In this document: piece by piece, positions 1 through 25,014 of the stretch
Layout: each line of letters starts with the position of its first letter
Position numbering within the stretch: position 1 is the stretch's first letter
Source: Amoeboaphelidium protococcarum X5
Lineage: Eukaryota > Fungi > Aphelidiomycota
Length of the DNA stretch: 64,000 nt
Assembly: GCA_023515725.1 (NCBI GenBank)
Contig: JALDTO010000266.1
Coordinates: 893,070 to 957,069, forward strand
Reading direction: 5' to 3'
Program-made: the position numbers and the translations under genes
The notes under the pieces: model-generated
What the model saw: the letters and a program-made list of their open reading frames with translations, nothing else
What the model was told of the DNA's origin: nothing
The model's database searches: none

Positions 1-597
1 GCTTAAGCAAATTGGTAGTGATTAAGAGTTAATTATTATCTGCAAGATGGTCCCGGACCACGAAGATATCGTCGTTATGAACTTTGGCTCTCAGTTTCGA
101 CCAGGCTGGATCAATGAATGTCAGAATATCTAATGAAGTTGTATTCCCGCAGAATATCATCTAAATCGTGGATTTATATAATGCTAATGGTGATAAGTTC
201 TCGTATATACCTTAATACATTGAAAAAGCTATCGCCAATGCTGTCGTAAAAGTCGTTTTGAAGGAGCCTGCAACAAGCACGTCTAGATTCTGATTCTTTG
301 AAGGCTTACCAGTGTCTATACTGGAAAATAACGCTGTAATAAGACTGTATATCAAAATCTGGCCGACTGCTATGCTAGCCTCAGAAGTTTAAGAGTTTGT
401 GAAATTCAGAATTGGCACTTGGCTTTTTCCAGCACATTTAATGGCATGATACTCTGCCCGAGAAGCAAGTATCATTAATTTAGATGTTCTTCACTGAAGC
501 CAAGTATGCTCGAGCAGATGTGCTGGTCTGTGAGGTTGAACGCCTGATTAAGGAGTTTTATGGATGTAAGATGGAAGCTCTGTTGGGTGATTTATGA
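1..597 (+). pseudogene. 3' end of F-box-like tandem family copy 0 (runs off window; disrupted)
   Basis: Family C-terminal motifs (SRF*FFEGLP..., ELALGFF); closest to copy 5 (19490-19700). In-frame TGA at 291-293 where copy 5 has TGG, plus frameshifts; final TGA 595-597. Confidence 0.75.
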
Positions 598-1491
598 AGG
601 AAGAAGCGTAATGTTCTAACTTGAACAATACTATCATTATAAACTTTGATCCTATTTGTGTCTACTTTTCAAAGCTCAACATTCTTTTTACGCCTCACTG
701 CTAGTCGATCGCGTTGGACGGCAATTTGTAACTTGACTTGTTTCAGCCTCTTAAGATGACAAATTAGCTGTTGACATACACATCCGACCGAAATATACGC
801 TGAATATGATGTGACTGTAATTCTGCCATTCAGTGTAAATTTGCATGATAATTCCCTTACTGACTGTTATTATCTTATGCAACAGATAGCTTTGTCGAGT
901 CATTGACGCGTCCCTCCGTCAAATAAGGCGCGTCCTCTCCTTTTGATGAAAACTGATGAACAGTCAAACTCAGCTGCAGACTGTCTTATCACATATAATC
1001 ATGTCAGATTTTATAAACCTGTTACAACTTCCGACTATTCATTTGCAATAGTGCTTAAGGTCTGTAGTTCTTTTACAACTTTGTTTGAGTATAGTAAGAA
1101 ATGGTAATGCGGAGAATAAATGTTCAAATGATCCTGTATTGATCAAACTACGATATGTAATATAATTAGGATCAAGGCTCTTATACAATTCCGTGCATGT
1201 GTCTCTTTTCCTCACAGTACTGTGAACATCAGCTTCTCCGCCTACAAAGTACATGTTCATATCTTTATAAACACCATTACAATCTCGCCACCACTTTTAG
1301 AGACGAGCGCATATTCTATCCACCAGATATCATTGACAGCTAAACATAAGTCCCATATTATTTCCTCTAGCCAATAAGTCTGCACAGAATTTGGGACGCG
1401 CTCCAAACAAAATATCTCCGTTAAAGTTCAAGCAGGCGAGACTTTTCTCTTCGCATAGCATTGCTTTACAGTATTCGCAACTGCTGACGTT

Positions 1492-3820
1492 ATGCTAACT
1501 CTGACAGATTTACTAGTTCTGCCTACAGTTCCTGTATATAGATATCTAATGCCGGTGGATTTACTGCAGTTGTATTAATGCAATCGCTAATGTTAGAGCG
1601 TAATTTAGACTTAGAAGGCTCAAGTAGAGAGACATACCTCAAGTATTATGGACCTCTACTAGCTGCCCATCGCATAAAGTCTCATCCGTATCTCAATTTA
1701 AAGACTGCTGAAGATCACTTATTCTTCTTCCATGAAGATATGAAGTTTAATGAGATTTTGGTATCTTCTGTTAACAAAGTCTTATGTCTCCAACAGTGAG
1801 AATGAAGTGGACGAGTGGAAGAAGGCATTGTGTAAGTATTGTGAATTAGACTTTGGTTATGAGGCTCCCAGGTAGTTGTACTTTAAGCAAATGTCAGATT
1901 TATACATGCGGCAATAGGAGGATTTATAGGTGGAGTCTGGGGAACTGTTTGCCTATTCATAGGATGATTTTCTGCTTACGCTATGTTTCACCTATTGTAT
2001 GGACTTTGAATATGACAAGAAGGATATTATCGGTAAATCTGTGTATGTGTCTCGCTTTGGATACTTTCAAGATGCAATGAATAAGTATGGATTGGAGATA
2101 ATAATTTATAATCTGGTGAGGTACAATCAGGGAAGAGGCTTTACGGATCCAGCTGATACCTCTGAATTCTTGACCAACTTTTGTTAATTCTTTTGCTTTG
2201 GCTCATATTCTGATTTATTGGTGCAGATTGAGAATATTCTAGATACTCGCCCTCATTTCTATGCTCTAGAAGCATACTTTTTAGTTATGAAGGGTCTCCG
2301 CAAGTATCAGACGATAGATAGAAAATAGAGATTTATGGCGTTCTTCTCAAAGCTTATATCATAGCCTGGTCATTTTACGATGCTCCGTGAATATAAGGAT
2401 ATGATGAGAGAGCGTCTCTTGTGTGAAGCATGCAATCTGGTGGCTGACTTATTTCAATAGCACGTTAAAGTTAAGTGGATTGTGAATCAGATCAAGTCGG
2501 TGAAGCATGTAACTTGTTTAGAATACGGATGGGCTGTGGTGTAAGTATTGGTGATTTATAAAGATTAGTTTGATGTACCTAACTTTTACAGTGAGTTGAT
2601 GGTGGAGAAATTCAGTAATTAAGAAACTTTAGACGAGGCCAAGTTGCTGTTAATGTCCCTGGTGTTGCTGCCAAGGAAGTAACGTACTTTGTATATTGTC
2701 TTAATGACGGAGCTGTTTGCCAAGTACAAGTGTAACGTGCTTACGGTTATCAAGTCTCTACTATAGACAGATTTTGTGGTTAAGAATGCCGACAAGTATT
2801 AGCTTTATTAAGCTGTGGATTATTTCAGTAAGCTCTTGGCTGATCATCACGAAGAATTGTTCGGTATTGCTCTGGCATCGTTTAGTAAAGTACATCCTAA
2901 AGGCACTGTGGATTGTGGTGGAGAATACCATGATGGAATGGTCAAGATTCTTATTCATTAGGTGGACACAGGCAGTATTAAAAATTCCTGGCTAAGCTGG
3001 ATGTGGCAACAATATCTGATTATCATGAGTATATTGTGACTAATTTGCTGTTTGAATACTGCTCCTACTATAAAGAGTCTTTTACGGATAAGGCGTTTAT
3101 GAAGCTGTTGACTCTATACTGTAAGCTTGGTGATCCTATCAAGACTGCAGGATTCCTGAAGATTTATCTTGAAGATGAAGATCGTGATGAGAACTTTTTG
3201 AAGACACTGAAGCGCCTATGTAATGAAGAGTAATTACGCGCTGTATGTGAGCTTTTGAATGAAGATGTAATTGAAACGTTGAAAGTGGGAGATGAATACC
3301 ATAAGCCTTGGATGAAGGAGATAAACTTGGCCATCAAGCTATCATTTCCTCAAAATATAACTAAAGTTGTTTAACTTACGAAAGATTAATATGGCAGTTT
3401 GGAGAAGGCACCTCAGATTGTACAAGCTTACATGCAAGGCCTTTGCATAATGGTCATCACTGATAAGCCTAAAGATTCTACATCCAGATTCTACTTCATT
3501 GATGGACTTCCGGCGTTTGTTTTAAAAGGGAAGGTGATATTGGGCAGTTATGTGCGCATGTGCGCATGTGGGCCTTGAGTTCATTGTTCAATCAGTATCC
3601 GAATATTCCACCGTAATAAGAACTGGCTCATGGGTTTTTTAATTGGTTGGAGAATAATAATAAAGAATTATCGCCGGAAGAACGTCGGTAGATGGTTAAG
3701 AATTTTGCAAAGGCTGCGACTCAAGAGGAAATGGTGGACAATTCGCTCATTGAAACTGTTACTGCATTGGCAGAACGTCTCGGTTATGACTTTGAAGAGA
3801 ACACGGATGAAGAGTACTGA
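1492..3820 (+). pseudogene. F-box-like tandem family copy 1 (frameshifted)
   Basis: MLTLTDLLVLPTVPVYRYLMPVDLLQL..., KYYGP, SRFGYFQDA, SRFYFIDGLP, ELAHGFF. Frameshifts near 1630 and 1790 and an 8-bp duplication at 3553-3568. Confidence 0.8.
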
Positions 3821-3966
3821 AATTAATTACTCGTGAATGATAATATTTGATTTCTAATTTTATGAGTGAGGATCATCATGTGGGTCCTTTTCCCTTAGGC
3901 CATCCTTAGACCGGTGTTGCACACTTTTATCCGTGTATTTGTTCATATCAGCAATCGCTTACCACA

Positions 3967-6294
3967 ATGACTTTTTCGTTGTACTAAATTCTATAGCTGC
4001 AGGATACCACGTTGTATGACTATTTGAGACCAGTAGATTTACTTCAATTAACACTGACTAGTAAATAGTGCAAAGACATAATACTGAGTTAGAGATCGCT
4101 AGTGCGACATTCTTATTGGAAATATTATGGACCTGTGTTGGCCATGTATCGCTGCAAGTCTCATCCCTATCTTCAACTAAAGACTGCCAACGATTACTTA
4201 CTCTTTCTGCACAAGGATTTGGGCTATGATAAATTACTGCATTTGAATTCGCTTAATTGGTGCGCACTTTATAATGAGGCTCCGGTCGAGGCATGGAACA
4301 AGGCAATCTGGAGTGGATTCTCTGTGGATGATCGCTATATGCCCCAAGAGTAGTGCAGAGTAAGTGAATGGCGGTTTTTCTATGAACCTGATATCAATTA
4401 CAAATCTCTGAATATGGAAGAACCTTTGGCCGTTTCCCAACTGGATTTTTTGATAATTCTATTCGGATTATACACCCACAATCAAGAACATTATGCCAAG
4501 GTTGATATGCGCTGCTTGCGGTATGGCTACGTCCACGATGCTCTAAAGAAGTTTGGCTTGCAAGTTCTAGTGTTGATATTTAACCTATATTACGATATGA
4601 AATTTCACGGGCGTATCAATAGACCAGAGACTGTTTCAATTGGGTTGTTTGAATCAATCTGCTAGCAATTTGCTCTGGGTGATGGTCGATAGGTATTGCA
4701 TAGATTGGCCAATTAAATGGAGGCGGCTCCTAATTTCAAAGTACTATTAGCACATTACAGAGCTACTAGAGATTTAGGATTGAATGATCAGTTGGATTTA
4801 AATGCATATTACATGGATGCTGTGACGCGCGTAGTCAAGCGTTATAGCTGTGCTTCTACCGCGTTATCAGACGAGATTGGAGGAGACTTGTATAGCCATT
4901 ATTAAGGTCTAGAAATATCTGATCGTCTTAAAGCAGAAATGCTTCGGTACTTAACATACGATTGGCTGTGTAAATTATTTCAGCAGTATGATTTTATACC
5001 TTCTATAGAGTTTGGTTGGCTTATGATTGAATTGTCGTCTGCTTTAGATGAGAATTAGTCTCTAGTAGTTCTTTAGTAGAAACTTGCCGATAAGATCAAT
5101 GGTGGTTGTATATAAGAAGCGGCGCATTTACTTATTGCTATTACTTCGTCCTAATTCATCAGGCTTGATTTCATGACATAGTTTGACATTAATTTGTTCC
5201 AAGAGTCGAAGGATGCAGTGACTCAAGTTTTGATGAAGCTGTTTGACTATATTCCTCGACTGTAAAATGACTATTTCAATGGTTGGCTCTCGATAGCGTT
5301 TATAGCATTCGGAAGAACGCTGGTAGATGAGCAACAATTGGCGATGTTATCTCGTCTCATATATGCTTATAGCTGTGCTTTAGGTCAACATAACAACGAT
5401 GTTGGTGAAGTTCGCGATTGTAATGAAATTGTACGTACTATCGGCGCATTGGGAGATTTTGATTTGTTCTAATAATTCATAAAGTCTCTAAACGCCAAGG
5501 ATGTGTCACAGTATAATGAACGTATGATGGGAAGAGTACTTCACATCTTGAGGTCTCGGTACAGCATGGAATAGGTGGATAAGCTTTTTTCCACATTGCT
5601 ATCTCTGTACAGGGAAATTGATGATCCCAAGAAGACTGCTTTATTTATTAATTATCATTGTTAGGAAGGCATTTAAGGCGACAAACTGCGGGAAATGGTA
5701 AAGAGTCTCCACTCAGAGGAGTAACTGAAGCAAATTAGTATGAACTTGGAAAGTGATGTCATTGAAGATTTAAAGTTGGGGCCAGAGTGTCATTCATCCT
5801 GGATCAAAGAGATTAAATAAGTTGCATCTCAGCTCAAGTTTCCTCATAATATGATCAAAGTAATGCGCATCGCCAATGACAACTGCGGCTCTTTTGCCAA
5901 TGCTCCTAAATGCGTTTAGAAAGAATTGCTATCTTTGATTGAATCGACCATCTTCATGCCGCTGGAATAGCGTAAATCACGATTTTACTTCTTTGATGGG
6001 TTGCCGTATTTTGTGTTTAAAGAGAATTTAATTATCCAGAAGTATATAGTTTCTTGGAAATGTGTCAAGGTGAGTCTGAATCGCCATCAGATCCCACATG
6101 AGTCCGAACTTGCCCATGGATTCTTGTCGTACGTTCATTCTGACAAGGTGCCCGTACGCGATCGCAGGTAGTTGTTGGGGAAATTTATCAAAGAGAATTC
6201 TCACTTGAGACTCATCAGCGTGGATTATATTACGAAGGTTTTAGTTGATGATTATGGATATCCACCTACATTGTCGACTAATGATTTTCAGTGA
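3967..6294 (+). CDS. F-box-like tandem family copy 2, intact 775-aa intronless ORF
   Basis: Read codon by codon with TAR=Gln: no TGA from ATG 3967 to TGA 6292-6294. N-terminus LQLQDTTLYDYLRPVDLLQLTLTSKQCKDII resembles the F-box consensus. Confidence 0.85.
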
Positions 6295-6457
6295 AATATA
6301 CTAGTGGAATCTCACTTTATTTTTTTTTTGACAGATAATATCACGTTGAACTTACTGCATATGGCAGCGGTTGTCACAGATCTTTATGACTTGGAACGCT
6401 TATACCGCTGGCTCCAAATTTCTATTTGATACACTTCACTCAGCTAAACAGCTCGCC

Positions 6458-8885
6458 ATGATGAATTCATCACTTTATGAAATACTGCAACTGCAGGACA
6501 CATCGTTATATGACTATTTGAGACCAGTAGATCTATTGCAATTAACTCTGAAAACCGCGAGTGTTAGGACATCATTCTTGGTTAAAGACTTATGGTGCGC
6601 AACTGCTATTGGAAGTATTATGGCCCGCAATTGGCAATGTACCGCGTGAAGTAGCATTCTTACCTGCAGTTGAAGACTAGCGAAGATTACAAGTTCTTTT
6701 TAGTGACTATCTTGGGTGCCGGGTGATCATTTATTGCGTTTATCAGCTCTTGGTAGTGTCCGAATCTGAATGGTACTGACGTGCCTGCATGGAACGAGGC
6801 CATCTTGCAATCGTTGGATGATGATCTGGATGAGTAGGACTCTGATGGAGGAGATTATCTCTTCTCCAAGTGGTCCGACTACTATAAGTATGGCGCAAAG
6901 AACATATGGCTCACTTTCGATGAATACCTTGCAACTTCCCCTATGGACGAGCTATTGATTACTGTATGTCGCGAATTTGCAGATGGTACTCTCGGCTCCC
7001 TTGACGATGAATCCGATGATGATAATGAAGATTCTACTTCTAAGAAGACCTAATCTTATAGAAGATTCATCTAAAAGCATCCTTACGTATGGAGATTTGG
7101 TTATATACATGATGCACTGCACAAGTACGGTATGCATGCCATGGTGTTTGCCGTGAACGACTTCTATGAGGAAATTTTTCTCGATACATTACGAACCTGG
7201 CGAATAGAGTCGGGCTAGAATATTGAAGAAGCTTTGCAAGCACTTTGCACTGTACTATAGCTGCTCGCTGGTGGAGCAATTTGAAGCTTAGTTTATTGCT
7301 GATCCTAATTTAAGAGTCCTTTAAGCTTATTACAGAGTGGTTCAAGAATTGGGTTTGTATGATTAGATGGATGTTTGTGTCCATATGAAGCAAGCTGTTT
7401 TAAAGATTATTGAACATTATTAGAGTATCGCTGGGTGTTAGAAAACAGTGCCGGAGGATAATGCTAGTGATCTTTACAGCTCAATGATCTTATCTGAGGG
7501 ACTTAAGCTCGAGTTACGTCAGAATCTATCATTTGAATGGGGTTTTCAACAGTTTGATCAAGTAGCAGTGGTGAATTCTATCCGATCCGCTTAGCTTATG
7601 GTTTAATTACTGATTGCATTTGATGTGCCTAATGGTTTGGATTACGTATATAAATAGCTGGTAGATAAGATCTCGTTGATAATGCAAAGTATCTACTAAT
7701 TGCTTTAGCTTCGTCTTAGTATAGCGTTAAAGAGTTGAAGCGTGCCTTTAAGACTGAGCAGTTGGAATAGTCAAAAGGCACTGTAGTAAGAGTGATATAC
7801 GCTCTGCTCGGTACTGATGAGATTGTTAGTAATGCAAGTCAGAATGGCTTGTCACGCGTTTTCGAACTATTATATTCGCTTTTGCTAAATTAGAAGAAGG
7901 AACTCTTTGGTAAAGTCATTTTAGTATTTAGCAGAGTGTATGATGAAGCCTCTCAAGACGATTTTTATTACACTTACCCACATCAGACTGAGCTGCTGAA
8001 GATTGTAAATCTATTGGGAGGTGCAAAGGAACTGGTGTAATTCATTGTCAATTAGAATGCTTAAACTTTATCCTAGTACAATACTAGCATTCTGCCATAT
8101 CTGCTGTATGAATTCAATTAAAAAATTAAAGAAGATTTGGTTAATAAAATGGCTGTACGTCTCGTGTCTTTGTATGCAGAAAAAGGTGATTTATAGAAGA
8201 CTGCCATGTTTTTGAAAACTATGTTGGCGAAGAGATATACTGTAGTGATGTTATTGGACGTAAATTGAAGAAGATACATACGCCTGAACAGCTAAAGTAG
8301 ATTTGCTCCTATTTGGATGCAGACTGTATCGATGCTCTACAGCTTGACAATCAGTATTAGAGCACTTGGATTCAGGAGGTCCACAAGGTCGCTGAACAGA
8401 GCCAATTTCCAGAAAATGTTATCAAAATTGTTTAACTTGCCATTGAAAATTGTGGTAGCCTGGATAAAGCTCCAGAATTTGTCGAGAGTAGATTGATTAG
8501 TATTTTGATGGGAACCGTAGTGGACCCACCTGAGGACTGCACGTCTAGATATTACTTCTTTGATGGACTGCCGTACTTTGTTATGAAAGAGAAGCTGATC
8601 ATCAAGTACTTTATTCAAGTTTGGGGGTTCGGTCCATTCTTGAAAAGTGATAGACAGCCGCCTGCTGAATCCGAACTAGCATTGGGCTTCTTTGACTATG
8701 TTCACTCTAATGATGATGATGATGACAATAAGGTGCCTGTGCACGATCGTTATGAAATGGTTTAGACATTTGCAGAGGTGGTATCTCTGATGGGATCTGC
8801 AGATTTGAAGGCTTCAGTTGTAGAATTGGCTTCCGAACATGGTTATGAAGTGTATGTCAATTAAGACGACTTTCTATTTGGGTGA
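6458..8885 (+). pseudogene. F-box-like tandem family copy 3 (disrupted)
   Basis: MMNSSLYEILQLQDTSLYDYLRPVDLLQL; frameshift at A4 6551-6554, TGA at 6724-6726; RFGYIHDA and SRYYFFDGLPYFVMKE motifs; ends TGA 8883-8885. Confidence 0.8.
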
Positions 8886-8974
8886 ATTTAGGTGAACTCT
8901 CACGATATGACACACGTAGTGAAGAAATTGAAAGCCTTTACTTAATTCTAAGAACTCTAATTATCATCAAATTT

Positions 8975-10657
8975 TCAATGATCAATTGCAACATCGTCAG
9001 TGTCTTCTAGTTTCCAAGAACCGCGCAAAGTCTTCCCACTGGTAATATTATCCTAGAAATGATACACCTTGCCTCTGGTAACATCCTCGCCAAAAATGAT
9101 CTCAATGCGATTTATGAAAGGATTTTCAGTACCTTTCACTATAGTCTCCAACGTCTCAAACATGAATTCATGCCCAAGAGCCAAATTTATTTTAAGGCGC
9201 TTTACTCGAGCCAACTTTAAAAACGCCTTTATAGCTTTAAGAGTGTTCTATGCATGAGCATCGGCATCCACATCAAAATTTGTTTCATACCAAGTATTGA
9301 CTACCGAGTCATGCAGAACGCGTTAATTATTTCCACCATCAGGACCCTTATAGTTGGCAAACTATAATTAGCTTTAAATTCCAGTCTAATTATCATCAGT
9401 AGGATTAGCTAAATCTAAAATAAACTAGATATAGACAGGATTTAAATAGATGAAAACAGGCACAATTTGGTCAAAATATCCAGCTAAAGCCATCTGCAAT
9501 CTAAATTTCTCAATCACCTCATAATCAAATTCATTTCGATAGCAGAAGACATATTTTAGTGACTCTGAAGGTAACCTTTGCAGGTTCAACTCTAACAATT
9601 AACGCTGAAGGCTGTGCATCTGATATCCAAAATCCTCGTTCCAACCGAGATCAACATTGCCTTCATTGTCATTCATTGTATGTAAGTTAAAAATGAACAA
9701 TATATCATTTCCCATAACTCTATTAAACTTCTAGAGCAATTTAAGCCAATCTTCCGCCTAGAATTAAGGACAGCTCCGCAGATTTAGTATAATACCTCTA
9801 ATATCATGCTTATACTTTTCAAAGCCGTTCAATAGCACAAAGCTCACATCGTCCCGAACATGATCAAGATTACAGACCGCGTATTCAATATCATACGGTA
9901 AATAAGCCTTAGATTGCAAGTTCATATGTCTTAATTTGGCCGATAAAGATGCAATGGTACTCACAGCAGAGCCGAATGGCAACGACCCCTCTGCGAAAAC
10001 ACCGTATTCCGTCTGATCCAGTTATTCAATCTGAAGAGGGACAGTACGCGCATACTCACCAAATTTATAGATCCTGGCTCCAACCAAAGATTCTGTCAAG
10101 CGCTAATGTTCTCTAACTCGCTCCTTTTCACATATTCTGATACCCTTAAAGTTTGATAACCACCATAATTAATTCTAGTAGACGAATTTTTACATATTCT
10201 TAAACCCATTAGCAGTAGACTTGAACCAGCGTGGGTCATAAACCGGATAAGGATCAATATAGTGCTCATAAAACAATTAAGGCGAGATTAGCGGATGCAA
10301 TTATCCTTTCACTATGCGGTGAATTTTTATCCAATTCAGTTATTAATGACACCATTTTAAGTCGTCCACCCCGCCGGGCGGCAGGAGTGGCTTATGTAAC
10401 AGAGTGGAGCTTTGCAGGACAGACTAGCAGAACTAATCAACAGCGTCCATGTACACGTCAGCATCAAGGGAATACTCCATTTGAGGACGCGTCAATCTGC
10501 TTGAGTCATATTTAGCACGCACCAGAATGTCCATTTTCATATCCTGAGGCAGCTCAGAGATATAGCCGGACAAAGTTTTATCTGGAGATACTTGCGCCGG
10601 TGTACCAAACACCAAATCCGACAAGGCAGAAAGCGAAATCAAAAGTCTAAAGTTCAT
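8975..10657 (-). CDS. Orphan 560-aa protein with probable signal peptide (candidate secreted effector)
   Basis: Continuous ORF with TAR=Gln joining track fragments 10433-10657 and 9764-9982; hydrophobic N-terminus MNFRLLISLSALSDLVFG; TGA at 8975-8977. Confidence 0.75.
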
Positions 10658-10829
10658 CTAATATAGGCTTGATATTTGATAAAATGATAAGAAATTGGCT
10701 CCGGGAGGATAGACGCACCAGTGGGTTTTGATATTTTTAAAAAATTTCTGAAAAAACTGCAGTATTTTGATAAGAAATCAATAAATTCGGTACTAAATTC
10801 AAGTTTATAGAGATGATGATGTGGATAAA

Positions 10830-13800
10830 TCACGAGCTGGATGACTACGTACGACCTTTTGATTGGATCGTCGTCTTCCCTTCTCCACCTTTGATTTTCC
10901 CGATGCAAGTACCGCGGGCGGTTCCACCGGGACATCCAGGATTGTCATACCTTCTTAGACCGCAACCTTTGCATTGCTTATTATTGCTAAGACTCAAAGA
11001 TTTTGGTTACGCAACTTAAATCTCTTTTGGTGCTACCTATACTGACTGATTAGAGGACTTTTTACTTACTTATACACTCGTCGCAACTAATTACATGCGC
11101 CGACTGCTGGTTTCAGCATTCCGAGACAATCATTGTGATCCAGAGATGACAGAGACTGGCTATACGACCAGCTATTAATCTACTATGCTACTTTGCTGGC
11201 ATGTGACATTAGCCACTAGATTCTTCTCCGCCAATGTCTAGCTGAGGCTATCATTGTCGCTATCATCAACGCAAACCGCGTTATGAGGAATCGAATCGGC
11301 TTCCGCAGGCTTCAATAAGTGCAGTGATATAGCTCCAATGTCACTTTCCAATAAAGCGCTCAACTACGCTGTCGAGGTGGAGGCCAAGCGATGAGCAGAA
11401 CTTCGTGTAACAATGTCAAGGTATCGAGAAAGATATAGCTCTAAATGTCGAGGAATCTTCTTGAATATAGTGAAACCATCCGGAGTTGCACAGCGATAGC
11501 CAGTGTTCCACTCATCCGCCATCTTCTGAAACGATATTCTTTTGATACTCCCAACTTGCCTTAAGTGCAAATTTAAAAGACTTTCAAATTATTAGTGCTC
11601 TTGAGAATTGAGCATAGGAAGGTAAGGAACTACAGACTTCGTCTTCTTTGCCAAATACTAGATAGATGGCTTGTAATGCCTAATCTATTCCTCAGATACG
11701 CTCTCATATTAATCTCGAGGAATGCAAGGGATAACTCCAAAGTATTCTGAACTAAGTGTGAGATCTGTCAAATCAGACCACCACTTGTGAACTGAGCTTC
11801 CATAAATAGACTTGGAAAAATTTTACACAAGGTCCATTAGGAAGTGGTCATAATGTCCTAGCTTAGGAAATAGACGATTTCTCTCGCTTGCTCTTACATT
11901 AAATCGGTGTCTTATTAGACTTAGAGCTGCGTCAGCAAATGCAGGGCCGGCATTCCAAGTCTTAAATTTCCTCACTAATTTCTAATGAATCCCCCGTTCT
12001 AGATCACTAGTACCTCTAATACATCGATAAGTTGTCAGCCCATTACTATCTTGACCTGTCTCGTAATACAGTCCGATTCCAACAGGGTCAGATAAGCATC
12101 CTTTATCGACGTGAACAAAAAGCTTCTTGAACGCATCCAGACAATCTTCATCAAGGAGTCGGACACCATCAGATGGATCACAATAGCAGTCCTTTATATA
12201 TTCGGCAATCAATACTTCAAGCCGCTTGCGGAGCTCCATAGGACTAGGAATTTCACGCCGACATCGCTCGAGAACCCAATCCGGCCTTGCAGCCATCAAA
12301 TCATCAAACGACTCATACTCATCGCTCTCTTTTACGTACTATTCTAGCGCAGCTCTATCTTAGGGATGTATGATAAATAAAGCATCTCTAAATTTACGGC
12401 AAAACTGAGGCGTAAACGCGTGACCTTTCTTAACCGGAATTCTCGCCATGGCATGATATGAATCTAGAAGCACCCTTGTTGTCAAACTAGCGTCAAACTC
12501 CGATCCATCACTGGTAGGACTGCAACAATCATCAGAGTTAACGCACGAAGAAATATAAAACTCTCTATCAATATGCTGCAGATATACTAAAAGACTTGCC
12601 ATCGCATCCTTAGCGGCATAGATTTACTACTCCTAAGTAAGTTTAGATTTCGTCCAATTTGACAATCGAGGCCCATTGGCAGACTTTTCCAGCTTATAGC
12701 CAAGAACTATTTAAACGAGAGCATCCAGGCTCAGCGTAGCCTTTTTAACAAGTCCAACGTCTTTAGCCCATTTCGATAACTCTAGAGTTTGACTGACACG
12801 GATGTTAAAATCTTATAGCAAATACTTAACATCGCCGCCGATAGATCTACCAATGAAGAGACATAATTACGATTCCAAAAGTAATTTGAGACTTGGAGGA
12901 AACTGCTTGAAAGAAGTGAGATGAAACAAGTAAACAACGCCATCTTGAAACGCCAATTGCAATAGGTCCACTTTACCGCCTTTCCAACATTATTAATAGT
13001 CCATTCAAAGTCCAAACCAATCTTCACCTGATCTTTGGTGGATACGCATCTACTAAATAACTCAAAAGCAGAAGCACAGGCAGATGAATAATCATTGAGG
13101 TAAATAATTTGCTTTGGATTAGGGAATTCAGATATCAGCTATGTAGAATGACGAAGGCTTGGAAATACAGATTCGTAAAAAGCTCTATCGTTGCAGAAAT
13201 TGTCCGTGTAAACCAGTTCGGGCGGTTAATGCCCCAAATTATTGTACGTCTCCTACATGTTCTCCATCTGATCCCTCAGATAGTCGTTGGACACTGATTA
13301 TACCAATGATTGCTGGAGAATCTCTTCATATTCATTCATGACTGAGTGCAATCCTTGGAATAACTACTACCCATTAACTTGCATTAAGTGCTTCGTCCAC
13401 TTAAAGCTGTGGTCAACCGAAAACACCTTTCCACCTCTTCTTTGTACCTCCAGATCGTAGTAAGACTTCTTTCTTTAATAATCTTTCAAAAAGACGGATA
13501 GCAAATAGTTGCCAGAAGAGGTGAATCCAGAGTACCCATTGGGATCGGCGAACTTTGAAAATTGAACAGCGGAAGAGTCAATCTTAGACGCAAAGAGTCT
13601 CGTTTACGACGCATATACAGCTTTCAAAGTATTTAACGCAGAGTAATATTGAGCCTCCAGTTCTTGATGCTTTAAAGAATGCAACTCTTTTAGATAGTCT
13701 GCTACAGCTTAAGGACCCATTGATTGATCAATAAAGATGTTAAGCATCTTTACAATCTTCAAATCAATTCCAGAGCGCTTCGACAATAAGCATGGGAATG

Positions 13801-14904
13801 CAAACTAAACCTCTAATGGAAACTAGCGCAAAACATCCGCTGACGTCGGCACAAAATGAGTATTACAATCTTTGCATTAATACCTGCATGTAGCTATGTA
13901 ATAACAATCTTCTAAGTCAACGATTCTTCGCAAATAGTCGGGAAACCCTTTTGGAACCACTGACCCCGATTAGCATGAAGGATTCGGACATGGGATCTTT
14001 AGATGAGGAAACATCACATCAGGTACAAATACAAACACTCTAGGATAGTAAAAATCATTTGGCTTCACTTAAAGTCCATCATTGATAGACTTAGTTATTG
14101 CCACAAGAGGATTAGGTGGTTCAATCCAAAACTACCACCTCTCACAGCTTTCATTACATTACTGTTGCGATCTTTAACTCTGGTAAAGACGGAAGCGAGA
14201 TACTCTGCAACAACAGAGCCAGCCTTAGGTTAAGCCAAATCATCATCAAATTCTTCAGACAGTTCATCTACTACCTGATTAGATTAGACGTCAGAGCGGA
14301 AGCCGCAGTTCAACTCCTCAAAATTATGGTCAGAGCCCTCCTACGGATCATCAATATCTCTTCCCTGATCTGACACTGGATCAATCTTTGCACTTTCATC
14401 ACTAGATGTTCCGACAGATAAAGTCTCAAACACCGGAGCTAAATTTGGCTAAGCAAGGGGGGCTAATCTACAGCATCAGCTGTTTCAACTGTGGGCGTTG
14501 CCTACAATCTACTGTCCGCAGAAGCTGCTTCAGAGGTTACAATCGGGACATTGATGAAAATATTAGGCTAATTTTAGTCATCATTGTCCACAATATCATC
14601 AGCCACGACTGCTTTGATCTTTTTGGAAGCTTATCTATCATTGTCAATAGAATCTGCAGCGGACTTTCTACCAGCACCAGCGCGTTTCCCTCCACGATAT
14701 TCTGGCAACTTGAATCTACATTTGCAGTATTAAAAACCATGCAATTATATAATTAGCTTACCTTGGCTCCTCCACAATCTTCTTCTTCCTACCAGAATTA
14801 AGTCTAGCCCCACCGCGACAGTACTTTTTTTTCTCAGCACCCAGTTGTTTTGGTCCCTCACCAGTCACAGCTTCGGGCTTAATCTTCAACCACTTATCCA
14901 TCAT
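10830..14904 (-). mobile_element. Zisupton/KDZ-like DNA transposase with inserted DEDDy (WRN-like) 3'-5' exonuclease; frameshifted as assembled
   Basis: Motifs in order: RGG..GRK basic motifs, Cys cluster (CPNPSC...RYQCKDC), FSVDHSFK, VMNEYEEI, YTDNFCND, exonuclease GLDFEW...YAAKDA, LLDSYHAMARI, YRCIRGTSDLERGIHQKL, C-terminal CKGC..CPG..C. One ~46-nt intron near 14716-14761; frameshifts at about 14460, 14130, 12982 and 11140. Confidence 0.75.
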
Positions 14905-15146
14905 GTCTCGTAGTTATTCTAAAAATGAGTTCTTTTTTATATCAGATTGCTGGCCTTGTTGGAATTCCGAAGCCTATTCTACACTAAATAAATAATAGCG
15001 GATGTGAGTGGGGAATAAAGATTACAGTGTTCTATTGTTTCAGCGTTTGTGACGTCGTTGCCATTGGTATTATCGACACGAGCGCGTTTCATTCTTCCCC
15101 CTCTCGCGCTCGCGCTTTTGCTTTTTACTGTTTACTGTCGGTGCGT

Positions 15147-17055
15147 TAGTCATAAGGTTGTCCAGTTTTGCAGAGGACGTGCTGTTCTCTTCCGGATAAG
15201 CTGATCAAAATGTTGGCCATCGTTCAAAAAGGACTAAGGCTGAAGACTAAAGAGTCCGGAATCTTCCATATGTCTAGCGCTTTGGTTATATCCACGATGC
15301 TATCCGTAATAAAGGCGTTGAAGCGTCGGCATTCGCTATAAATCATTACCATGATTAGTTTATTCACTTTGGTCATGATAGCTGGGCAGAGATGCTAGAA
15401 TCTTTAATAAGCTTTGTGAATACTTTTAATTGGGCGAGAGTGGCCAAGTTGTTTAAAAGCTTGATGATTTATGCAAAGATGATCCTAGCTTCTCAGATAT
15501 CTTGGATTACTACAGAGCGGTTCAGGAATTGGGTCACTAGTTGGATGTAAGCTCTCATCTTTAGCATGTGGTAGTTTGATTGATTGACCAGTGCTTATAC
15601 AACTCTCTGTCTGAAGAGGAAGAAGATTTCGGGAGCAATCATGTACGTCGACTTCATTAGCTTTTATTTATACCTGGTGGGTTATAGCCGTATTTGCGTT
15701 AATATCTGTCTTATAATTGGGTACGCTCGTAGTTTGAAGGTATCATAGTTTTAAATGATATCCTGATCGCTTGGCTTATAGTTGAAAGGCTTGCAGCGTA
15801 TGAGAATCCAGACAGTTTGTCGTTGGTGTGTGAAAAAATTGTAGACAAGCTAAATGGTGGACTTCTTGATGAAGCGATGTATTTACTCACTGCACTCATT
15901 TCATCAGATTGTGCTCGTGATTACTTGTCGTGCCACCTAAAGATTAAGAGATTCCATGTATCTAAAGCGGCTCTCTGTAAACTGTTGATTAATATGCTTG
16001 AAACTGATTACATGGTTATAGACGCACGTTATTATAGTCTGTCTAAAGCTTTTGAAGTATTTGAGCCTATCTTGGTGGATATGAAATAGGAATTTATCTC
16101 TAAAGTTATCATAGCGTTCAGTAGAGCTCATGAAACGATTAAAGATTTTCATCAATGCCCAGAACATTAGTAATTAGTGCGCGTTGTCAATGCCTTAGGA
16201 GGAGCGAGAGGATTTGAATAGTTTATAATGTCGTTAGGTCCACTCATTCTATCTCAATGCCATCCCTGTGTTCTGAATTGTCTCTTCTATGAATACCGTT
16301 CAGATTATGAGGCAGAGTTGGCTGACTAGATTTTCATTAAATTATTGTCTGAGTACGCTAAATTAGAAGATGTATAGAAAGCAGCTGAATCTCTAACTCT
16401 GTATCTAGACGAATAGATGGATGAAGATATTGAAACTGTAGGCATTTAGCTGAAAATGTATTTCCTCATGATCAACTTTAATAGATTTGCTAACACTTAA
16501 GCTCCGATCATATTGAGGCTTTGGATATTTGCGTATAATTTCAAAGTCCTTGGATTTAGGAGATTGATAATATTGCTCAATCGATCCAATACCCTGACAA
16601 TATCACTCAGATTGTCCAAATTGCCAAGGAGCATTGCAATATGCTAAGTAAAGCACCAGAGCGCGTAAAAAGTTAATTCTTGTCGCTGATTTTTCAGGAA
16701 GTTTTAAAGCATCCATAATGAGAATTCACGTAAGTTCCAACTTTTTGAATATCTGCCGTATTCTGCCATGAAAGAGAATGTTATACTTGAATAGTTTATA
16801 ATGGTGTATAAAATGGGTAAGTTACTGATTACGTTGACTGGGAAATATTTCCCTTCAGAGTCTGGTCTTGTCAAAGGCTTCTTCAATTATGTCCGATCTG
16901 ACAAGGTTCCTCGTAAATGCTATAGTAAACTGGTAAAGACATTTGCCAAGTGTGTGATGTAAAATGGTTCAGACAGTCTCAAGGATTTAACTTAAGAGCT
17001 GGCTGACGAGTATGACTATGACATTGACATGGATGATCGTTGTGGCTACTAATGA
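15147..17055 (+). pseudogene. F-box-like family copy 4, 5'-truncated next to the transposon
   Basis: Starts mid-protein (..PYVQRFGYIHDA), DKLNGGLLDEAMYLL, FQLFEYLPYSAMKE, SGLVKGFFNYVRSDKVP; lacks the N-terminal F-box region; internal frameshifts. Confidence 0.75.
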
Positions 17056-17184
17056 TTCGGATGTTGATATTACTGCATACTAATAAACGTGTTTGTTCTG
17101 ATTCGCATCAAATTTTATGGTACAGATCCGTGAGCGACTTTATTATTATCTCCAAGTAGAAAAAGTTCAAGCTATCGCCCAGCA

Positions 17185-17310
17185 GTTCACTACTTTCTCA
17201 TATCAGATTCGTAAATCCAACCTAGCAGAGAAGAGGCACGCCGGTCAGCTTTTAACAGCGAGATGAACATGATCTTGTCTTACTCAGACTAGTCCATTAT
17301 ACTACTTATC
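17185..17310 (-). pseudogene. Short remnant paralogous to the Crinkler-like gene at 20244-21872
   Basis: High nucleotide similarity to ~20820-20940 (e.g. tcagcttttaacagcgagatgaacatga shared). Confidence 0.8.
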
Positions 17311-17436
17311 ATCATTATAGATCAGAGACAAGCGCGCCGGAGACCCCTTTATCAATATCTTGTCAACTCCTCAATGTTGATAAATTGAGAGGAGAGAGAG
17401 AGTTAAGCCATCCAACAGAAAAATTATCTTTAAGGC

Positions 17437-19810
17437 ATGATGTCTAATCTCACGAATCTTCTCTAGCTGCCCACGACTACTTTGCATTAATACCTGAGGC
17501 CTGTGGATCTATTGGAATTGTGTATTAGCTGCAAAGAATGCCGTGACACCATTCTTAAGTAAAGATTGCCTCTTTTTAAGGTGTACTTTTGGTACTATGG
17601 CCCTCTGATTGCTGCGGACCGCATCAGACATCATGCGTACCTCCAGCTAACGTCTAAATAAGATTACAGACACTTCCTCCATTCTTATATTAAACATTTT
17701 CCGGTTCTATTAGACTTTGCAAGGCACCGTTACGTCAATGAAAACGAAGAGACTTTCATATTAGATATAGCATGAAGAAATGCCATCAAGGAGTTTTATC
17801 CCTCTAATACGAAAAGTTCTATTAGGAAGGGTAAGTACGAGCAAATAAGGTTTAAGAAATGGTCAGATTTGTATAGTAAGAACGAAATATATTGTACAGA
17901 TAGCAAAGACTTGGTGCTGGCTTCATCTCAGCTTGACTTGATTATATCATTATTTGGCATAGTTGCGAAAGAGTTCTGGTATCCCGGGACTGAACAAGAT
18001 CCTCCTGTTATGTCGGTTTTTGGTTATTATCACGATGCTATAAAGAACTTCTGGCTTGATGCTCTGATGATTGTCGTAAATAAAGAATTTGATGCCCGAG
18101 ACTATGATCATTGTAGGTCATTGAGCCGGGCTTTTAATCGAATTTCTGGCTCGGTTCACCGCCTTGACGTATTTATCGGTCGAATATGCGATTACTGTTG
18201 CCTTGGTACATGCGATGAAGTGAGAGAGAAATTGTTCAATTACTTGGAAGTTTCTCCCCATTTCTGTGGACTCTATGCGTATCTTAATATTCTCAAGTAA
18301 CAAGACTTGATCGATGATAGTAAGAACCCAAAATAGTTCTTTTCTGAATTAGTGATGAAGATTTTGAACCACCCTGGCCAATCGAATCTTATTTCAAATG
18401 GTCTTCACCGATTTTGGTTGATCAGAAATTATATGCAAATTTCTAATAAATTTGGTCAACTATTAACGCGTCATTTGTCTACTGAGTGGATTCTCCAATA
18501 GATCGAAGAAGTGGAAGTTGCGTCTAGCATTGAATGGGGATGGGCTGTGTTGTCTCTACTAAAGTTGTACAAGAATGTTACTGAGATTAATGGTATTTAC
18601 AGCTTGATTGTCATCGAAAAGCTCAACAATGGTCTGGCAGTAGAGGCCATGAATTTGTTTATTGCTTTATATTCTTCCAAGGCTGAATACGCGTTTGAAT
18701 GTGATACAGAACTGCTCTCTGATTCTGCAGTGTAAACGTTAGTCCAAGTGCTGGAATCACTATTGGAAAGTTAGATTGTACTTTGGAATGCTGTAGATTT
18801 TCAGATAGGGAAACCATTTTTATCTGCTGAGAAGTTCTTACTAGATCATAGATAATTTTTCATATGCAAGACTATATCAATGTTTAACCGAGTTCGCTGT
18901 AATGTAATGTATGATTGTACCGGGTTGCATGATTAAGTGAAAATGATTGTTGAAAGTCTTGGTGGACTAAAGAAATTTACAAAGTATGTGCTAAGTATTC
19001 AGCCAGACGTATTTAGTGGACTGAATTATTGCCTTTTCATGGATATTCTATGCGATCACATCCCTCTTCATGATCAAATTACTCTAGAGGAAGTTTCCGT
19101 CCATATGGTGGAATTATGTTTTCAATAGACTCACTTCTGCCCTGACATTCTAGCTTAATACTTTGAAAATATGTACAGGTGTAACGCGTACTCCCCGGTG
19201 GCTTGCTAGAAACTATTAAAGATTGCTGATTATGAGTAGTTAGAGTGGCTATTCAACTATTTTAGTCAAGATGAGATAGTTGCTTTGAATATAGGATCAC
19301 GGTTCTTGCAGCCGTGGGTTAGTAAATTGATTAAGATTGAAGAAGACTCTTAATTCCCAGATAACATCATATAGATTGTGCAAATTTGCCATACAAATGA
19401 TAAAAATTTATATTTTGCTCCCACTAGCGTTCGCAGAATTCTGGCTCGCTGCATCAGTAATGCCGTCTTGCTATAGCCGGAGCACAGTACATCTAGATAC
19501 TGGTTCTTTTGAAGGATTGCCACTTTTAATTATGCAGGAAAGAATCATACTGAGAATTTATATTGATATTTGGCCTCATGCAATACTAGCGTCTCAGAGT
19601 TTAAGAGTCTATGGGTATGAGGAGCTGGTTCGTGGCTTCTTTCATTGCATTGAGTCTAATGAACTTTTGCCTCAGGAGAGAGTATCGCTGATCTAGTCGT
19701 TCTGTCAAGAGGCTGCGGATGCTAATAATGATGCCTTGTTGGATGTGGCCTTGACGTTGGTAGAGCAGTCAAAGATCATTTCCATGGATGATTTGGAGCC
19801 TATAAGGTGA
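17437..19810 (+). pseudogene. F-box-like family copy 5 (near full length; one nonsense codon, one frameshift)
   Basis: MMSNLTNLLQLPTTTLHQYLRPVDLLELCISCKECRDTIL; TGA at 17773-17775 at a family-conserved Trp; extra T at 19507-19510; ends TGA 19808-19810. Confidence 0.8.
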
Positions 19811-19943
19811 TACATTTGTAATACATTTGATAATCCGATTTTATATCTTAATTTTAATAACTGGAGGGCCACATTTCGTTTTATCTCTCTCTCCTTTAAA
19901 ATCTGTGACAGCTTTGACGCGTCGATTTGTCACTCTCAAACTT

Positions 19944-20165
19944 ATGAACGCGGCATCTATACTTGAACTCTTACTACTTCAGGACTCAAAACTTTATGGT
20001 TATTTACGGCCTGTAGATTTATTGCAGTCGAAATTGTCATGTCGCGATGGTCAAGATATAATGTTGGGGTAAAAGTCTCTAATTCGTCGCACTTATTGGA
20101 AGCACTGTATTACGGACCAATGTTGGCAGTCTATAGCTGAAGAGTGTCAGTGATTATATGATGAG
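19944..20165 (+). pseudogene. F-box-like family copy 6, 5' fragment
   Basis: MNAASILELLLLQDSKLYGYLRPVDLLQSKLSCRDGQDIMLGQKSLIRRTYWK, then degraded YYGP region; similarity ends near 20165. Confidence 0.75.
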
Positions 20166-20243
20166 TCGCCTAAAGATTTAGATATTTTATATTCCCAATA
20201 TTTTTCATGAGATTTTATTTAATTCATAAAATGCAGCTAGAGT

Positions 20244-21872
20244 TCAATTAGTGTATTTATAATCCAGATCGGACACGAGCAGGAACTAGGAAATCTTACT
20301 CAGCAAAGACTTGTTGCCTTCAACTAAACGAAACCTCTTCACGGCATTAACAAAGATTTACTGCTTTACAACGCCTTCCTCCACTCCATTTATTAGTTCA
20401 GACGCAGTATTATACCCATGATTGGCCAGAGACGCAGCTCTTTTTATGCCTATTCCAGACAGACTTTCGACAGGACAATTTTCAATCGATCTCATTTCTG
20501 GCTCAATTTTGCGCGCCTTAAAATCATCCATACCTTTGCAGACTACGAACACCAGATTTATCTTCAAATCTTTTCTATCAGCATAACCTTCTTTAACCAG
20601 AAATTCAATCAAAGAGCCAGACTTTACATCGTGATTATAATTAAGTGTGATCTAGAACAAATAAAGTTGATTAGGAGCAAGTTCCAACAACCCATCAAAA
20701 ACAGGACAATTTTACGAATGGACGTGTTTGTACTGATTCGCACCAAAGTCTAATGCCACAGATCCGCCAACAGCTGGAGAATCCTCAAGAGGCAGGAGTT
20801 CAAACTATCCTCCAGAGGTCAACTACTTTCTTATATCAGATTCGAAAATCCAACCTAGAAGAGAGGATGCTCGCGGATCAGCTTTTAACAGCGAGATGAA
20901 CATGACCTTGTCGTGCTCAGAGTAGTCAATTATACTTTTTTAAACTTCATCTGCCACATAAGCAGAACAAAACTGCAGCTTATACATCCTCAGGGTAGTA
21001 AACGCGCCAAATTCAGGTTTCATAAAGAGCATTAGATGAACGACTTCTTTCGAATTAGCGTTAAACACCACAAAGTCATTCAATTAGGAATAAGACTTGA
21101 TACCTCGACATTCCGCTTGGAGTTCCTAGATATAATCTTAAACCTAATCAGGATCCAATGTCAGGCAAATACGCGCAGTGCCACCAACTAACGAATATCT
21201 TCTCTCAACCTCCGCTTGGCCAATATCCAAATTTAATATGTCGCGCGCCTCGAGCAACTCATCCAGAGACCAAAAAGGCATGTAGTAAATAGCAGGTGCA
21301 CTTTTGCTACTGGATTTGAGCCAGCTATAGTTCGGACTAGTAAAGCAAATCATTTGTGTCCTGTGTGGAAAAGAAAAAGGAGGCCCATCGTACAGATGAA
21401 TAGCATCCGGATAATCAGTGATGAGATCCCTTGCGTCAATTTTTTTCAACTCGCCATTTGCGCTTCTAGCATGCTGAATCTCCTGAGCCCCATCTCTCAA
21501 TCCCTTATGTGGCGGATAAACGACGACTTCTAACAAATTTCTACCCCCATCAAAAGCGGCAGCCACAATCTGCTTGAAAGGATATGATTCGCGATACTTT
21601 TAAAAGAAATGAGCATAAAATACAGACTTGCCAATACCTGGAGTTCCGCTTACAGTAGTAATAAACTTTTTCTTGTCCAAGGTTTGGATGAGATATTCAT
21701 AATACTCATCATAGCAGTCGCGAATGTAATATTTAGAAAAGGCAGCCTGGTTAGACTATGGCAGCTAGAGCTGAGCAGGGGTCATGTCGAATACAGACTA
21801 CGCCATCATACTATCATAGGTAGCATTGAAGGCACGCGCGTCATAGGTCCTATTCAAATTCTAATCTTCCAT
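20244..21872 (-). CDS. Crinkler/RHS-type P-loop NTPase + PD-(D/E)xK-fold nuclease + helix-hairpin-helix protein, 542 aa
   Basis: Intact intronless ORF (TAR=Gln): YYIRDCY, Walker A GTPGIGKS, HLYDGP, FTSPN, YYMPFWSLDEL, GGTAR, GWIFE, NCPVFDG..LFQIT..H, HhH LSGIGIKRAASL. Confidence 0.8.
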
Positions 21873-21964
21873 ATTTTATTCAGTAAAAAAATAAGTGTAT
21901 CGTTTAACTCAGTGTTGTTAAAAAAATGTTTTGGTTAAAAGAAAGAAAAGAAGAAGGAGAAATT

Positions 21965-23435
21965 GTGGGACATTTAACAAGTAATAGAATAGATCTTGAA
22001 GAGAACCATCACAAACCTCTGTTGATAGAAATATTAACTAATTATCAATCATCACAATCAAATACCCGTAACTTAGTACGATAACAAGAAGTGGTAGAGA
22101 ATTCATGAGAGTTTGTAAATATCTGATGCTCTTCAAGACGTTATATACGATTGTTTGACTCATGGCCAAGTGTGGGATTTTATTTGGTCAATCGTATCTG
22201 ATGGATTTCTTTCACAATAAAGTTAAAGATGGGCTTGTGGATGAAGCGGCTAATTGGCTTATGGCTGTTCTGACTTATAAACCTTTAGGAGAATATTTGT
22301 CTGAATATCTAAAAGTTGAGTTATTCAATGACTACAAGGATGTCATCGCCCAAGTATTTGACAAGTTGGCAGGCACTCCAGAAGTTTTGAAAAATGCACG
22401 ATTCTTTGATCTTGCTATGGCTTTTAGCTTATTTAGCAGTTTACTGGCCGATGCATAGCTATAGCTGCAGATACTGTAGAAAATCATTTTTACGTTAATT
22501 ATGGTACATGATAACATTAGAGATGCGTTAGAGTGTTTTAATCACAGTCAGTGGATGACCATTGTCCATTGTCTGGGAAAGGTGAAAACCTTTACATTGT
22601 TTATACTAAATATGGACGCAAATACGCTCTCTTAATGTCACTGTTGCGTATTGGCTCAAGTTATGCATACATACGTATCCAATTACAGGTAGAGAGAGTA
22701 GAACGATAAGCTGAGTATTCATTTACTGCACTTGTATAAGAAATTGGGGATTTTGAAAAGACTGCCGCGTTTTTGAGTGCGCTATACATTGATCATATGT
22801 CTTCTGATGCTGTCGTACAAGTAATGAAGACTTTGTACTGTGCAGAAGATTTGCATTAGATTTAATCCCAATTATATGATGACTGCGTAGATGCTTTTCG
22901 ACTGGGACCAGCATATCACGATACGTGGTTTCAAATGGTAAACACCGCCGCTGAAGAGTTGCCATTCCCCTAGAATATCATCACAATTGTCCAACTAGCT
23001 ACTGAGAACTGTGGTGAATTCATGCAAGCTCCTGATTGTGTAGTGAATACTTAAGTTCAGGTGATTTAAAGTGCCATAACAAGGCCGCTAGAGGAACGTA
23101 CCCCCAGGTTCTACTTTTTTGACGGAGTGCCTTATTTTGTGATGAAGGAGAAACTGGTGATTCAATATTACATTTTAATGTGGTCATTATGTCAGAGGAT
23201 GTAAGATCAGCCTTGTATGAACAGTAATATGCTACCTGACGATTCGAAACTTGTCTATGGATTCTTCGAATATATCCATTCTAGTCAGGTTCCAGAGTTA
23301 GATCAATAGCAAATGGTGGAAACTTTTGTCAAATATGTTGATTTTGGGAATCGCGATAGTATGAAGACTTTGGCCAAATCGTAAGCACAAGAGCATGGGT
23401 ATCAAGTTATTGCAAATGGTATTGGATTTTTCTGA
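21965..23435 (+). pseudogene. F-box-like family copy 6, 3' fragment (start approximate)
   Basis: HESLQISDALQDVIYDCLT, KVKDGLVDEAANWL, PRFYFFDGVPYFVMKEKLVI, SKLVYGFFEYIHS; internal deletion and frameshifts; TGA 23433-23435. Confidence 0.75.
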
Positions 23436-23761
23436 CTCTTCCGATTTAATATCTCTTCCGTTACTATCTCATTTAAAGATTTTTACGCGCTTTACTGTAA
23501 ATACTGTATTATTATTATACCATTTCATTAGTCTCTATTTAAAAACGCTTTGTAGACTTGTTTGAGACTGCTGATGTGCCTCCAATCAATATTGAATTCA
23601 ACTTTTAGCTTGTTGTTTCAATGCTAGTGACGGATATTAGGAAGGAGCAAGCGCACTGTGAAACTTCATCTGATTCTAACGCGGGTTACGCCTTGATAAA
23701 TAATTGTTACAACTGAACTAAGTTTTACGAGTGTCTGTTTTTTAGTTGATAATCACCAAAA

Positions 23762-24824: not shown

Positions 24825-25014
24825 TCTGATCTGATATTATATTTTATTAATCTAAAGAGAGAACTTTCTCTATCTGTAATTATTCGACATATTAATCTAA
24901 TAAATTATTCTACTATCTTATTTTAGTCAGAGGGATAAGCGTTGACACGAATTTATTCAGTTGGACGGTGTGGGTGATCAAAACAAGTTATGATTAACGA
25001 AACGCGTCTGAACT

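Follow-up and report, generated by a model that had tools for sequence, protein, structure and literature searches.

The first third of a 64,000-nucleotide stretch of the Amoeboaphelidium protococcarum X5 genome (C264:893070-957069, C264 being contig JALDTO010000266.1; hereafter the window) raises two questions: what is done by a family of long proteins that domain annotation does not recognise, and why are nearly all of the genes that encode it in this place broken? The organism belongs to the sister group of fungi, the aphelids, and aphelid biology has hardly been explored at the molecular level. The genes lie in a tandem array at window positions 1-23435, and a first-pass annotation made from the letters alone had proposed that they encode a lineage-specific set of F-box adaptors. 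The evidence assembled here on balance favours a divergent, lineage-specific family of predicted substrate receptors of SCF (Skp1-cullin) ligases that is undergoing birth and death. The family consists of proteins of ~775-810 aa, predicted to be cytoplasmic, from a pair of homeologous tandem arrays, each protein combining a divergent F-box-like N-terminus of ~45 aa, a nearly invariant linker and an irregular alpha-solenoid of ~650-700 aa. The N-terminus is predicted to dock on Skp1 and the variable solenoid to bind targets. The array evolves by birth and death, and its set of units differs by gains or losses from that of the partner array on contig C212. Of its eight units seven are disabled, whether through frameshifting, a premature TGA, truncation next to a mobile element or the nesting of another gene, and the intact gene is held under purifying selection.

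The family was read throughout with genetic code 6, in which TAA and TAG encode Gln and TGA is the sole stop. Under translation table 11 the array region contains almost no long open reading frames (ORFs); with TGA as sole stop, long frames appear throughout the window, and TAA/TAG codons of one paralog align with CAA/CAG Gln codons of the others. Units were mapped by tblastn under this code, using as queries the 775-aa translation of 3967-6294 and then the orthologs from the partner array. Window 1-23435 proved to hold eight units of one ~775-aa family, all in the same orientation: seven, and a further 3' fragment cut by the left edge. The array extends upstream of the window, where a search with a profile of the N-terminal module (profile A1) places two further modules at C264:889376 and 891344. 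The first-pass annotation had described seven co-oriented, apparently intronless paralogs. The co-orientation and the continuous, intronless alignment stand, but the count becomes eight with the left-edge fragment, and the array is interrupted at 8975-15165 and 20160-22041 by unrelated genes and a mobile element. The description of the paralogs as highly diverged is borne out by amino-acid identities of 23-49% between units, and the motifs by which they had been recognised are present on the forward strand.

The sole intact unit is unit 2, or copy 2 (3967..6294, forward strand), which encodes 775 aa with 26 in-frame TAA/TAG codons and aligns with its paralogs over the full length without introns. 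Three parts can be distinguished in it, all on the forward strand. The F-box-like N-terminal motif (3967..4092, residues ~1-42) comprises a leader helix, an LQ(LP)D turn, a YLRPVDLLQL helix and an SKQCKDIIL helix. It is followed by a nearly invariant, family-specific linker (4093..4230; R..VR..YW.YYGP.L.A.R.K.H.YLQLKT..DY) and by the predicted alpha-solenoid body of ~690 aa (4231..6291), in which the motifs RFGY.HDA, K.NGG..EA and SRFYFFDGLP are found.

F-box proteins are usually built as a module at the N-terminus of a large repeat body. Every full-length member of the present family follows this plan, with the module at residues 1-85 and then a separate solenoid of ~690 residues, and the module also begins proteins that, beyond it, have no detectable similarity to copy 2. 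Several comparisons point to an F-box in the module. Of 26 members, 5 match PF00646, more than match any other Pfam family, and 2 match PF12937 (best E 0.0059, sub-threshold), and those matches with inspected coordinates are all N-terminal and in the same register; in the PF00646 scan of the genome, a distant module copy at C154:180631-180714 reached 20.1 bits against a cut-off of 20.5. When the module alignment was compared by hhalign with eight canonical F-boxes of the same genome, a score of 26.9 was obtained (P=6.5e-5, probability 64%), whereas 120 controls with shuffled columns averaged 9.6 (standard deviation 2.0, maximum 16.2) and the alignment in reverse scored 16.4. The sole match of the module profile in the PDB was the F-box of FBXW7, in register and with a non-significant E of 1.1, and in a language-model search with residues 1-130 the top named look-alikes were all F-box clusters (best score 0.92). 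Short helices fall at residues 16-19, 22-31 and 33-41 in AlphaFold2 models, at the positions expected of F-box helices 1-3, with a predicted local distance difference test score (pLDDT) of ~85 for the last two. The LP pair is kept in about half of the copies, and divergent module copies (of the L046, L038 and L040 types) keep both LP and the Trp of the third helix, as is expected if the ancestor was a true F-box. Skp1 genes were found at four loci in the genome, which would fit two genes with two homeologs each.

Other observations weigh against this. No family scored above threshold when ten stop-free pieces and 26 full-length members were scanned with Pfam, and whole-genome scans with PF12937 and PF00646 returned ~30-38 canonical F-boxes and no window copy at E<=10. 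The best protein scan scores for PF00646 were 16.9 bits (P0010) and 16.5 bits (a piece of L038), against a gathering score of 20.5, and the best for PF12937 (18.9 bits against 24.3) belonged to P0024, which is not an aphelid protein. The stretch from LP to YL is ~3 residues shorter than in canonical F-boxes, a shortening of the first helix, which is only four residues long in the models; in copy 2, LP is replaced by LQ and the third helix lacks the Trp. With the full-length family profile in place of the module, hhalign gave a P of only 0.071. A fold search with the 74-residue module model found no match by Foldseek, and by VIA-align nothing above Z 3.8, with F-box proteins at only Z 2.6; these searches are uninformative because the helical unit is so small. 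The most conserved residues of the family, moreover, lie just after the F-box-like part, and its key function may sit there.

These same observations feed the alternative that survives best, namely that the motif is no working F-box, being a product of convergence or a degenerate remnant, and that the family is a lineage-specific alpha-solenoid scaffold with the invariant YW.YYGP...H...D segment as its functional site and a role unrelated to SCF ligases. It is favoured by the consistently sub-threshold Pfam matches, by the loss of the Pro of LP and the Trp of helix 3 in copy 2 and many paralogs, by the uninformative fold search, and by the position of the invariant columns (residues 50-80, 139 and 187), which fall beyond the F-box-like part. 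The linker YW.YYGP...RIK.H.YLQLKT is the best-conserved part of the family and its real signature, the nearly invariant columns of the alignment (A4) being Y50, Y54, G55, P56, H66, L69, D76, F80, Y139 and G187 in the numbering of a close relative of copy 2, P0038. On the other hand, four independent weak signals agree on an F-box in one register, and the more divergent module copies keep LP and Trp as a true F-box ancestor would lead one to expect. The scaffold role is accordingly held to be rather unlikely, though it deserves to be kept in mind, and the N-terminal motif is likely, on present sequence comparisons, to be a very divergent homolog of the F-box. What had been claimed from the letters thus stands as far as sub-threshold Pfam matches, the hhalign comparison with the genome's own F-boxes and the language-model search concur in one register; it falls short of a Pfam gathering score, and LQ, the missing Trp and the short first helix depart from the canonical pattern.

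The body was modelled with AlphaFold2 on P0038 (MP228_010486), using an alignment of 26 members; this protein shares 84% identity with copy 2 and 93% with the C212 homeolog of copy 2. The model is almost entirely helical, with a pLDDT of 84.8 and a predicted template-modelling score of 0.79. A Foldseek search of the PDB with it returned karyopherins (CRM1, transportin-3), Ltn1 and designed repeats at E 1e-4 to 7e-3 and template-modelling scores (TM-scores) of 0.12-0.29; VIA-align returned Pex8 (Z 9.0) and FANCI (Z 7.8), values below the tool's own meaningful level for helical repeats; and in the ESM Atlas generic solenoids alone were found, with TM-scores of at most 0.39. All that these libraries yielded were solenoids of a generic ARM/HEAT/TPR type. 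The full profile searched against PDB sequences matched designed helical repeats only, at E>=0.003. The model therefore describes an irregular ARM/HEAT-type alpha-solenoid of ~650-700 aa, an assignment that concerns fold class and not family membership, and the expectation of a helical, unrecognised substrate-binding region agrees with a confident, all-helical model that has no specific known relative.

The family is large within its genome and appears to be confined to its species or species complex. Profile A1 gives 57 matches in the 23.6-Mb assembly. When pieces of copy 2 were searched against the genome, the C-terminal piece found 22 matches and the N-terminal piece 51; many module copies (on C155, C179, C298, C154 and C162 and at 2.26 Mb of C264) resemble copy 2 over the N-terminal ~80-110 residues only, and the later parts of those proteins therefore appear to be different. 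Against 1.84 billion representative proteins, the family profile found 24 at E<=0.001 and 19 at E<=1e-10. Those of the 19 strong matches that were looked up are all A. protococcarum 'hypothetical protein' entries of two strains (MIR68 and MP228 tags) or unnamed Logan contigs, and a word search likewise returned A. protococcarum proteins only. Among the weak profile matches, P0018 and P0021 were rejected as relatives, being translated satellite repeats; the non-aphelid P0022 is one true F-box unit repeated six times, hence its inflated E-value; and the remaining non-aphelid match is one short F-box-like protein. A search of the literature returned no paper that combines this species with 'F-box'. 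The full-length match to a characterised family, which the first-pass annotation had named as the result that would speak against it, was found neither in the Pfam scans (ten stop-free pieces, 26 full-length members) nor in the PDB search. As far as the searched databases show, the family appears specific to A. protococcarum or its species complex, in agreement with the lineage-specific origin first proposed.

The remaining units of the array, all on the forward strand, are broken, truncated, split or partial in the code-6 map, so that the claim that 3967-6294 alone is intact was upheld. The breaks were located by aligning the DNA to the intact orthologs on C212. Unit 0 (2..594) is a 3' fragment whose start lies upstream of the window; it matches residues ~586-784 of the ortholog C212:498378-500660 in three frames, at 58%, 56% and 76% identity in frames 2, 3 and 1. 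Unit 1 (1492..3817) is a frameshifted pseudogene with 90% nucleotide identity to C212:495189-497414; it runs through frames 1, 3 and 2, its reading being broken by single-base losses at 1626 and 2953, a single-base gain at 1756 and an 8-bp tandem duplication at 3550. Unit 3 (6461..8885; 87% nucleotide identity to C212:482135-484564) is likewise a frameshifted pseudogene, with breaks that include single-base losses at 6552 and 8215, a single-base gain at 7183 and a 10-bp deletion at 7669. Unit 4 (15269..17025) lacks its 5' end: the first ~190 codons are missing, only residues ~191-800 remain, in four frame segments and frameshifted, and homology to C212 begins exactly at the end of a 4.36-kb mobile element; correspondingly, profile A1 has no match between C264:899777 and 910533. 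Unit 5 (17437..19807; 82-90% amino-acid identity to C212:473750-476101) is a pseudogene with one frameshift, a single-base insertion at 19507, and one TGA codon, which arose by a change of TGG to TGA at 17773-17775 at a Trp conserved in the C98 and C212 copies. Unit 6 is split, its 5' part (19944..20160, residues ~1-78, frameshifted) and 3' part (22041..23435, residues ~295-777, frames 3, 1 and 3) lying 1.9 kb apart around an insert that carries a minus-strand P-loop gene. The split is also present on C212 across the stretches compared (C212:470930-472366 lying outside the comparison), and C212 and C98 cover most of the insert; since C212 has the same split, it is apparently older than the divergence of the homeologs. 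Introns were rejected as an explanation of the shifts in frame, because every break is spanned by an uninterrupted alignment to the intact orthologs; the shifts are insertions and deletions (indels).

On the partner array, C212:498902-466558 is an inverted, collinear counterpart of window 5-10685 and 15233-26000 (83-89% nucleotide identity), the C212 reading leaving out 470930-472366, 478294-480000 and 510001-511976. At least nine units stand on C212 as single unbroken frames, among them the homeolog of unit 2 (C212:489917-492238; 83.5% amino-acid identity), and three (C212:492605-494905, 487374-489731 and 484738-487053) have no counterpart in the window. The pair of arrays fits the genome-wide duplication reported for A. 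protococcarum (PMC10608142). The window thus holds the decaying member of a pair of homeologous tandem arrays, and the birth and death that had been suspected is seen in its pseudogenes, in the copy-number differences between homeologs and in the insertion of a mobile element. As a separate observation, window 16790-21956 has an extra copy, 97.4% identical, at C98:1150425-1155590, and window 22040-26000 an extra copy, 93% identical, on C200, in each case beside the ~88% C212 homeolog; parts of the region are therefore present in more than two versions in the assembly.

Between copy 2 and its C212 homeolog, the nonsynonymous substitution rate (dN) is 0.086 and the synonymous rate (dS) 0.316, for a dN/dS of 0.27. 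By region the ratio is 0.12-0.13 over residues 1-250 and rises to as much as 0.69 over residues 501-660. As a control, the flanking methyltransferase gene gives 0.089 at similar dS. Copy 2 is under purifying selection, and the family evolves about three times faster than its housekeeping-type neighbour, a difference that is no evidence of an arms race. The first-pass wording, which placed the array among rapidly turning-over ones, does not hold as stated, given this ratio and the constraint that it implies.

The selection data also enter into a second alternative, that much of the decay is an artefact of single-base errors in a long-read assembly and more than one unit is truly intact. Some of the frame-breaking indels are indeed single bases beside homopolymer runs (8215, 6702, 19507), and units 3 and 5, read in corrected frames, have a dN/dS of 0.25-0.27, which is not above that of the intact pair; the breaks are therefore recent relative to the homeolog split, or not real. 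Errors of this type, however, do not produce a 10-bp deletion (7669), an 8-bp tandem duplication (3550) or a change of TGG to TGA (17773), nor do they remove the start of unit 4 next to a mobile element or split unit 6 in the way that is also seen on C212, and copy 2 and the flanking genes read cleanly. An artefact on this scale is improbable; the breaks in the window units are real mutations, except that a few homopolymer-adjacent single-base indels could be assembly errors.

The first-pass annotation had linked arrays of this kind to conflict or immunity, and for the present family that link is a conjecture. A bolder version of it would make the family more than a further set of SCF adaptors: a diversifying repertoire of intracellular sensors that rests on a new invariant module (YW.YYGP-H-D) beside a relic F-box and is kept in 'accessory patches' together with mobile elements, a Crinkler-like P-loop NTPase and fragments of toxin-like ADP-ribosyltransferases. 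Such a locus, serving innate immunity or self/non-self recognition in the lineage closest to fungi, would be of a type not seen before; this is a long shot. Some bacterial and nematode plant pathogens use F-box effectors to hijack the Skp1/SCF machinery of their hosts. That the present proteins are likewise delivered into the algal host to hijack its Skp1/SCF machinery, as might be imagined for a lineage-specific, diversifying family that shares its genomic patch with a secreted orphan and mobile elements, in an intracellular parasitoid of algae whose ubiquitin-mediated proteolysis genes rise during infection (PMC8657485), is very improbable, since the N-termini of copy 2 and its paralogs are unlike signal peptides when read by eye, the N-terminal 250 residues are strongly constrained (at the dN/dS given above) with no sign of pervasive positive selection, and the family is not mentioned in that study.

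Several other elements lie within or beside the array. The low-copy mobile element of 4.36 kb (10800..15165) takes the place of the 5' end of unit 4. It has a full-length copy, 98% identical, at C179:84751-89121, a partial copy, 94% identical, at C179:485290-487826, and end fragments on C205, C192 and C162; in the C212 homeolog it is absent, the only match there being the last 34 bases of the query, which belong to the flank. Its minus-strand ORFs (11130-14239) had no Pfam match on stop-free pieces. The minus-strand ORF nested in split unit 6 (20244-21908; 554 codons) carries the Walker A sequence GTPGIGKS and, at its C-terminus, a weak match to a helix-hairpin-helix (PF14520, E 1e-3). It is probably a live gene, because it is conserved on C212 (91% identity over 305 alignable residues, dN/dS 0.28) and for the most part contained in the 97% identical DNA copy on C98. 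An orphan ORF inside the array (8975-10657, minus strand) has a signal-peptide-like start and no Pfam family, and is conserved on C212 with 75% amino-acid identity and a dN/dS of 0.42. The end of the array is marked by the gene used as selection control, which encodes an S-adenosylmethionine-dependent methyltransferase (23697-24824, forward strand; Methyltransf_31, E 1e-15). Elsewhere in the genome, fragments like Tse2-type ADP-ribosyltransferase toxins (PF18648, E 1.3e-7, above cut-off) flank single family genes on C98 and C142, at 7482-7736 and 4000-4243 of L035 (C98:248001-258000) and at 5003-5245 of L036 (C142).

Two public gene models are affected by these arrangements and deserve correction. 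MIR68_011512 (P0036, 1429 aa; window 3967-8882) is a chimera in which residues 1-736 of unit 2 (to window 6174) are fused to pseudogene unit 3 by way of four short, invented introns that bypass frameshifts. In MIR68_001030 (P0037), the F-box-like start of the C98 family gene has been replaced by the upstream Tse2-type ADP-ribosyltransferase-like fragment. The wider interest of the family lies in its size and its invisibility: its ~57 loci equal or outnumber the whole canonical F-box set of the genome (~30-38 loci), and it escapes domain annotation and was found in no other species among the databases searched. If its members are SCF receptors, they would more than double the substrate-targeting repertoire of the parasite and would add a holomycotan example to the expanding F-box arrays of nematodes and plants. 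The pair of arrays also illustrates cleanly how unequally genes can be lost from the copies of a duplicated genome.

Among known systems, the solenoid first invites comparison with ARM/HEAT proteins such as CRM1, transportin-3, Pex8, FANCI and the N-terminal domain of USP38, with which it shares, over residues ~200-770 of the model, a stack of helical hairpins; it reaches TM-scores of only 0.12-0.29 and has no sequence similarity to them. FBXO47, an F-box protein with ARM repeats (PF24467, ARM_FBXO47), resembles the family in plan, in that an F-box-like part is followed by armadillo-type helical repeats. The family proteins are nearly twice as long as FBXO47, however, and PF24467 matched only 1 of 26 members (P0040, C212:487374-489731; E 0.0046, well below the 27-bit cut-off); a PF24467 scan of the genome found nothing, with the controls silent too. 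Kinship with FBXO47 was therefore rejected, the resemblance being one of repeat type only. A further parallel is offered by the lineage-specific, expanded F-box receptor families of nematodes (FBXA, FBXB and FBXC) and plants (FBA, FBK and FBD). As in those families, a short N-terminal F-box-type module is carried on a variable protein-binding body (here a predicted one), dozens of paralogs occur in one lineage only, in tandem arrays with many pseudogenes, and a conserved N-terminus is joined to a more variable C-terminal half. In contrast to them, the aphelid family has an F-box-like module that falls below the Pfam thresholds and in which the first helix is shortened, and its body is a predicted alpha-solenoid without a Pfam family in place of FTH/DUF38, kelch, LRR or FBA domains. 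Finally, where the nematode and plant arrays are compared with this one, much of the 'death' seen here is the loss of one homeolog after genome duplication.

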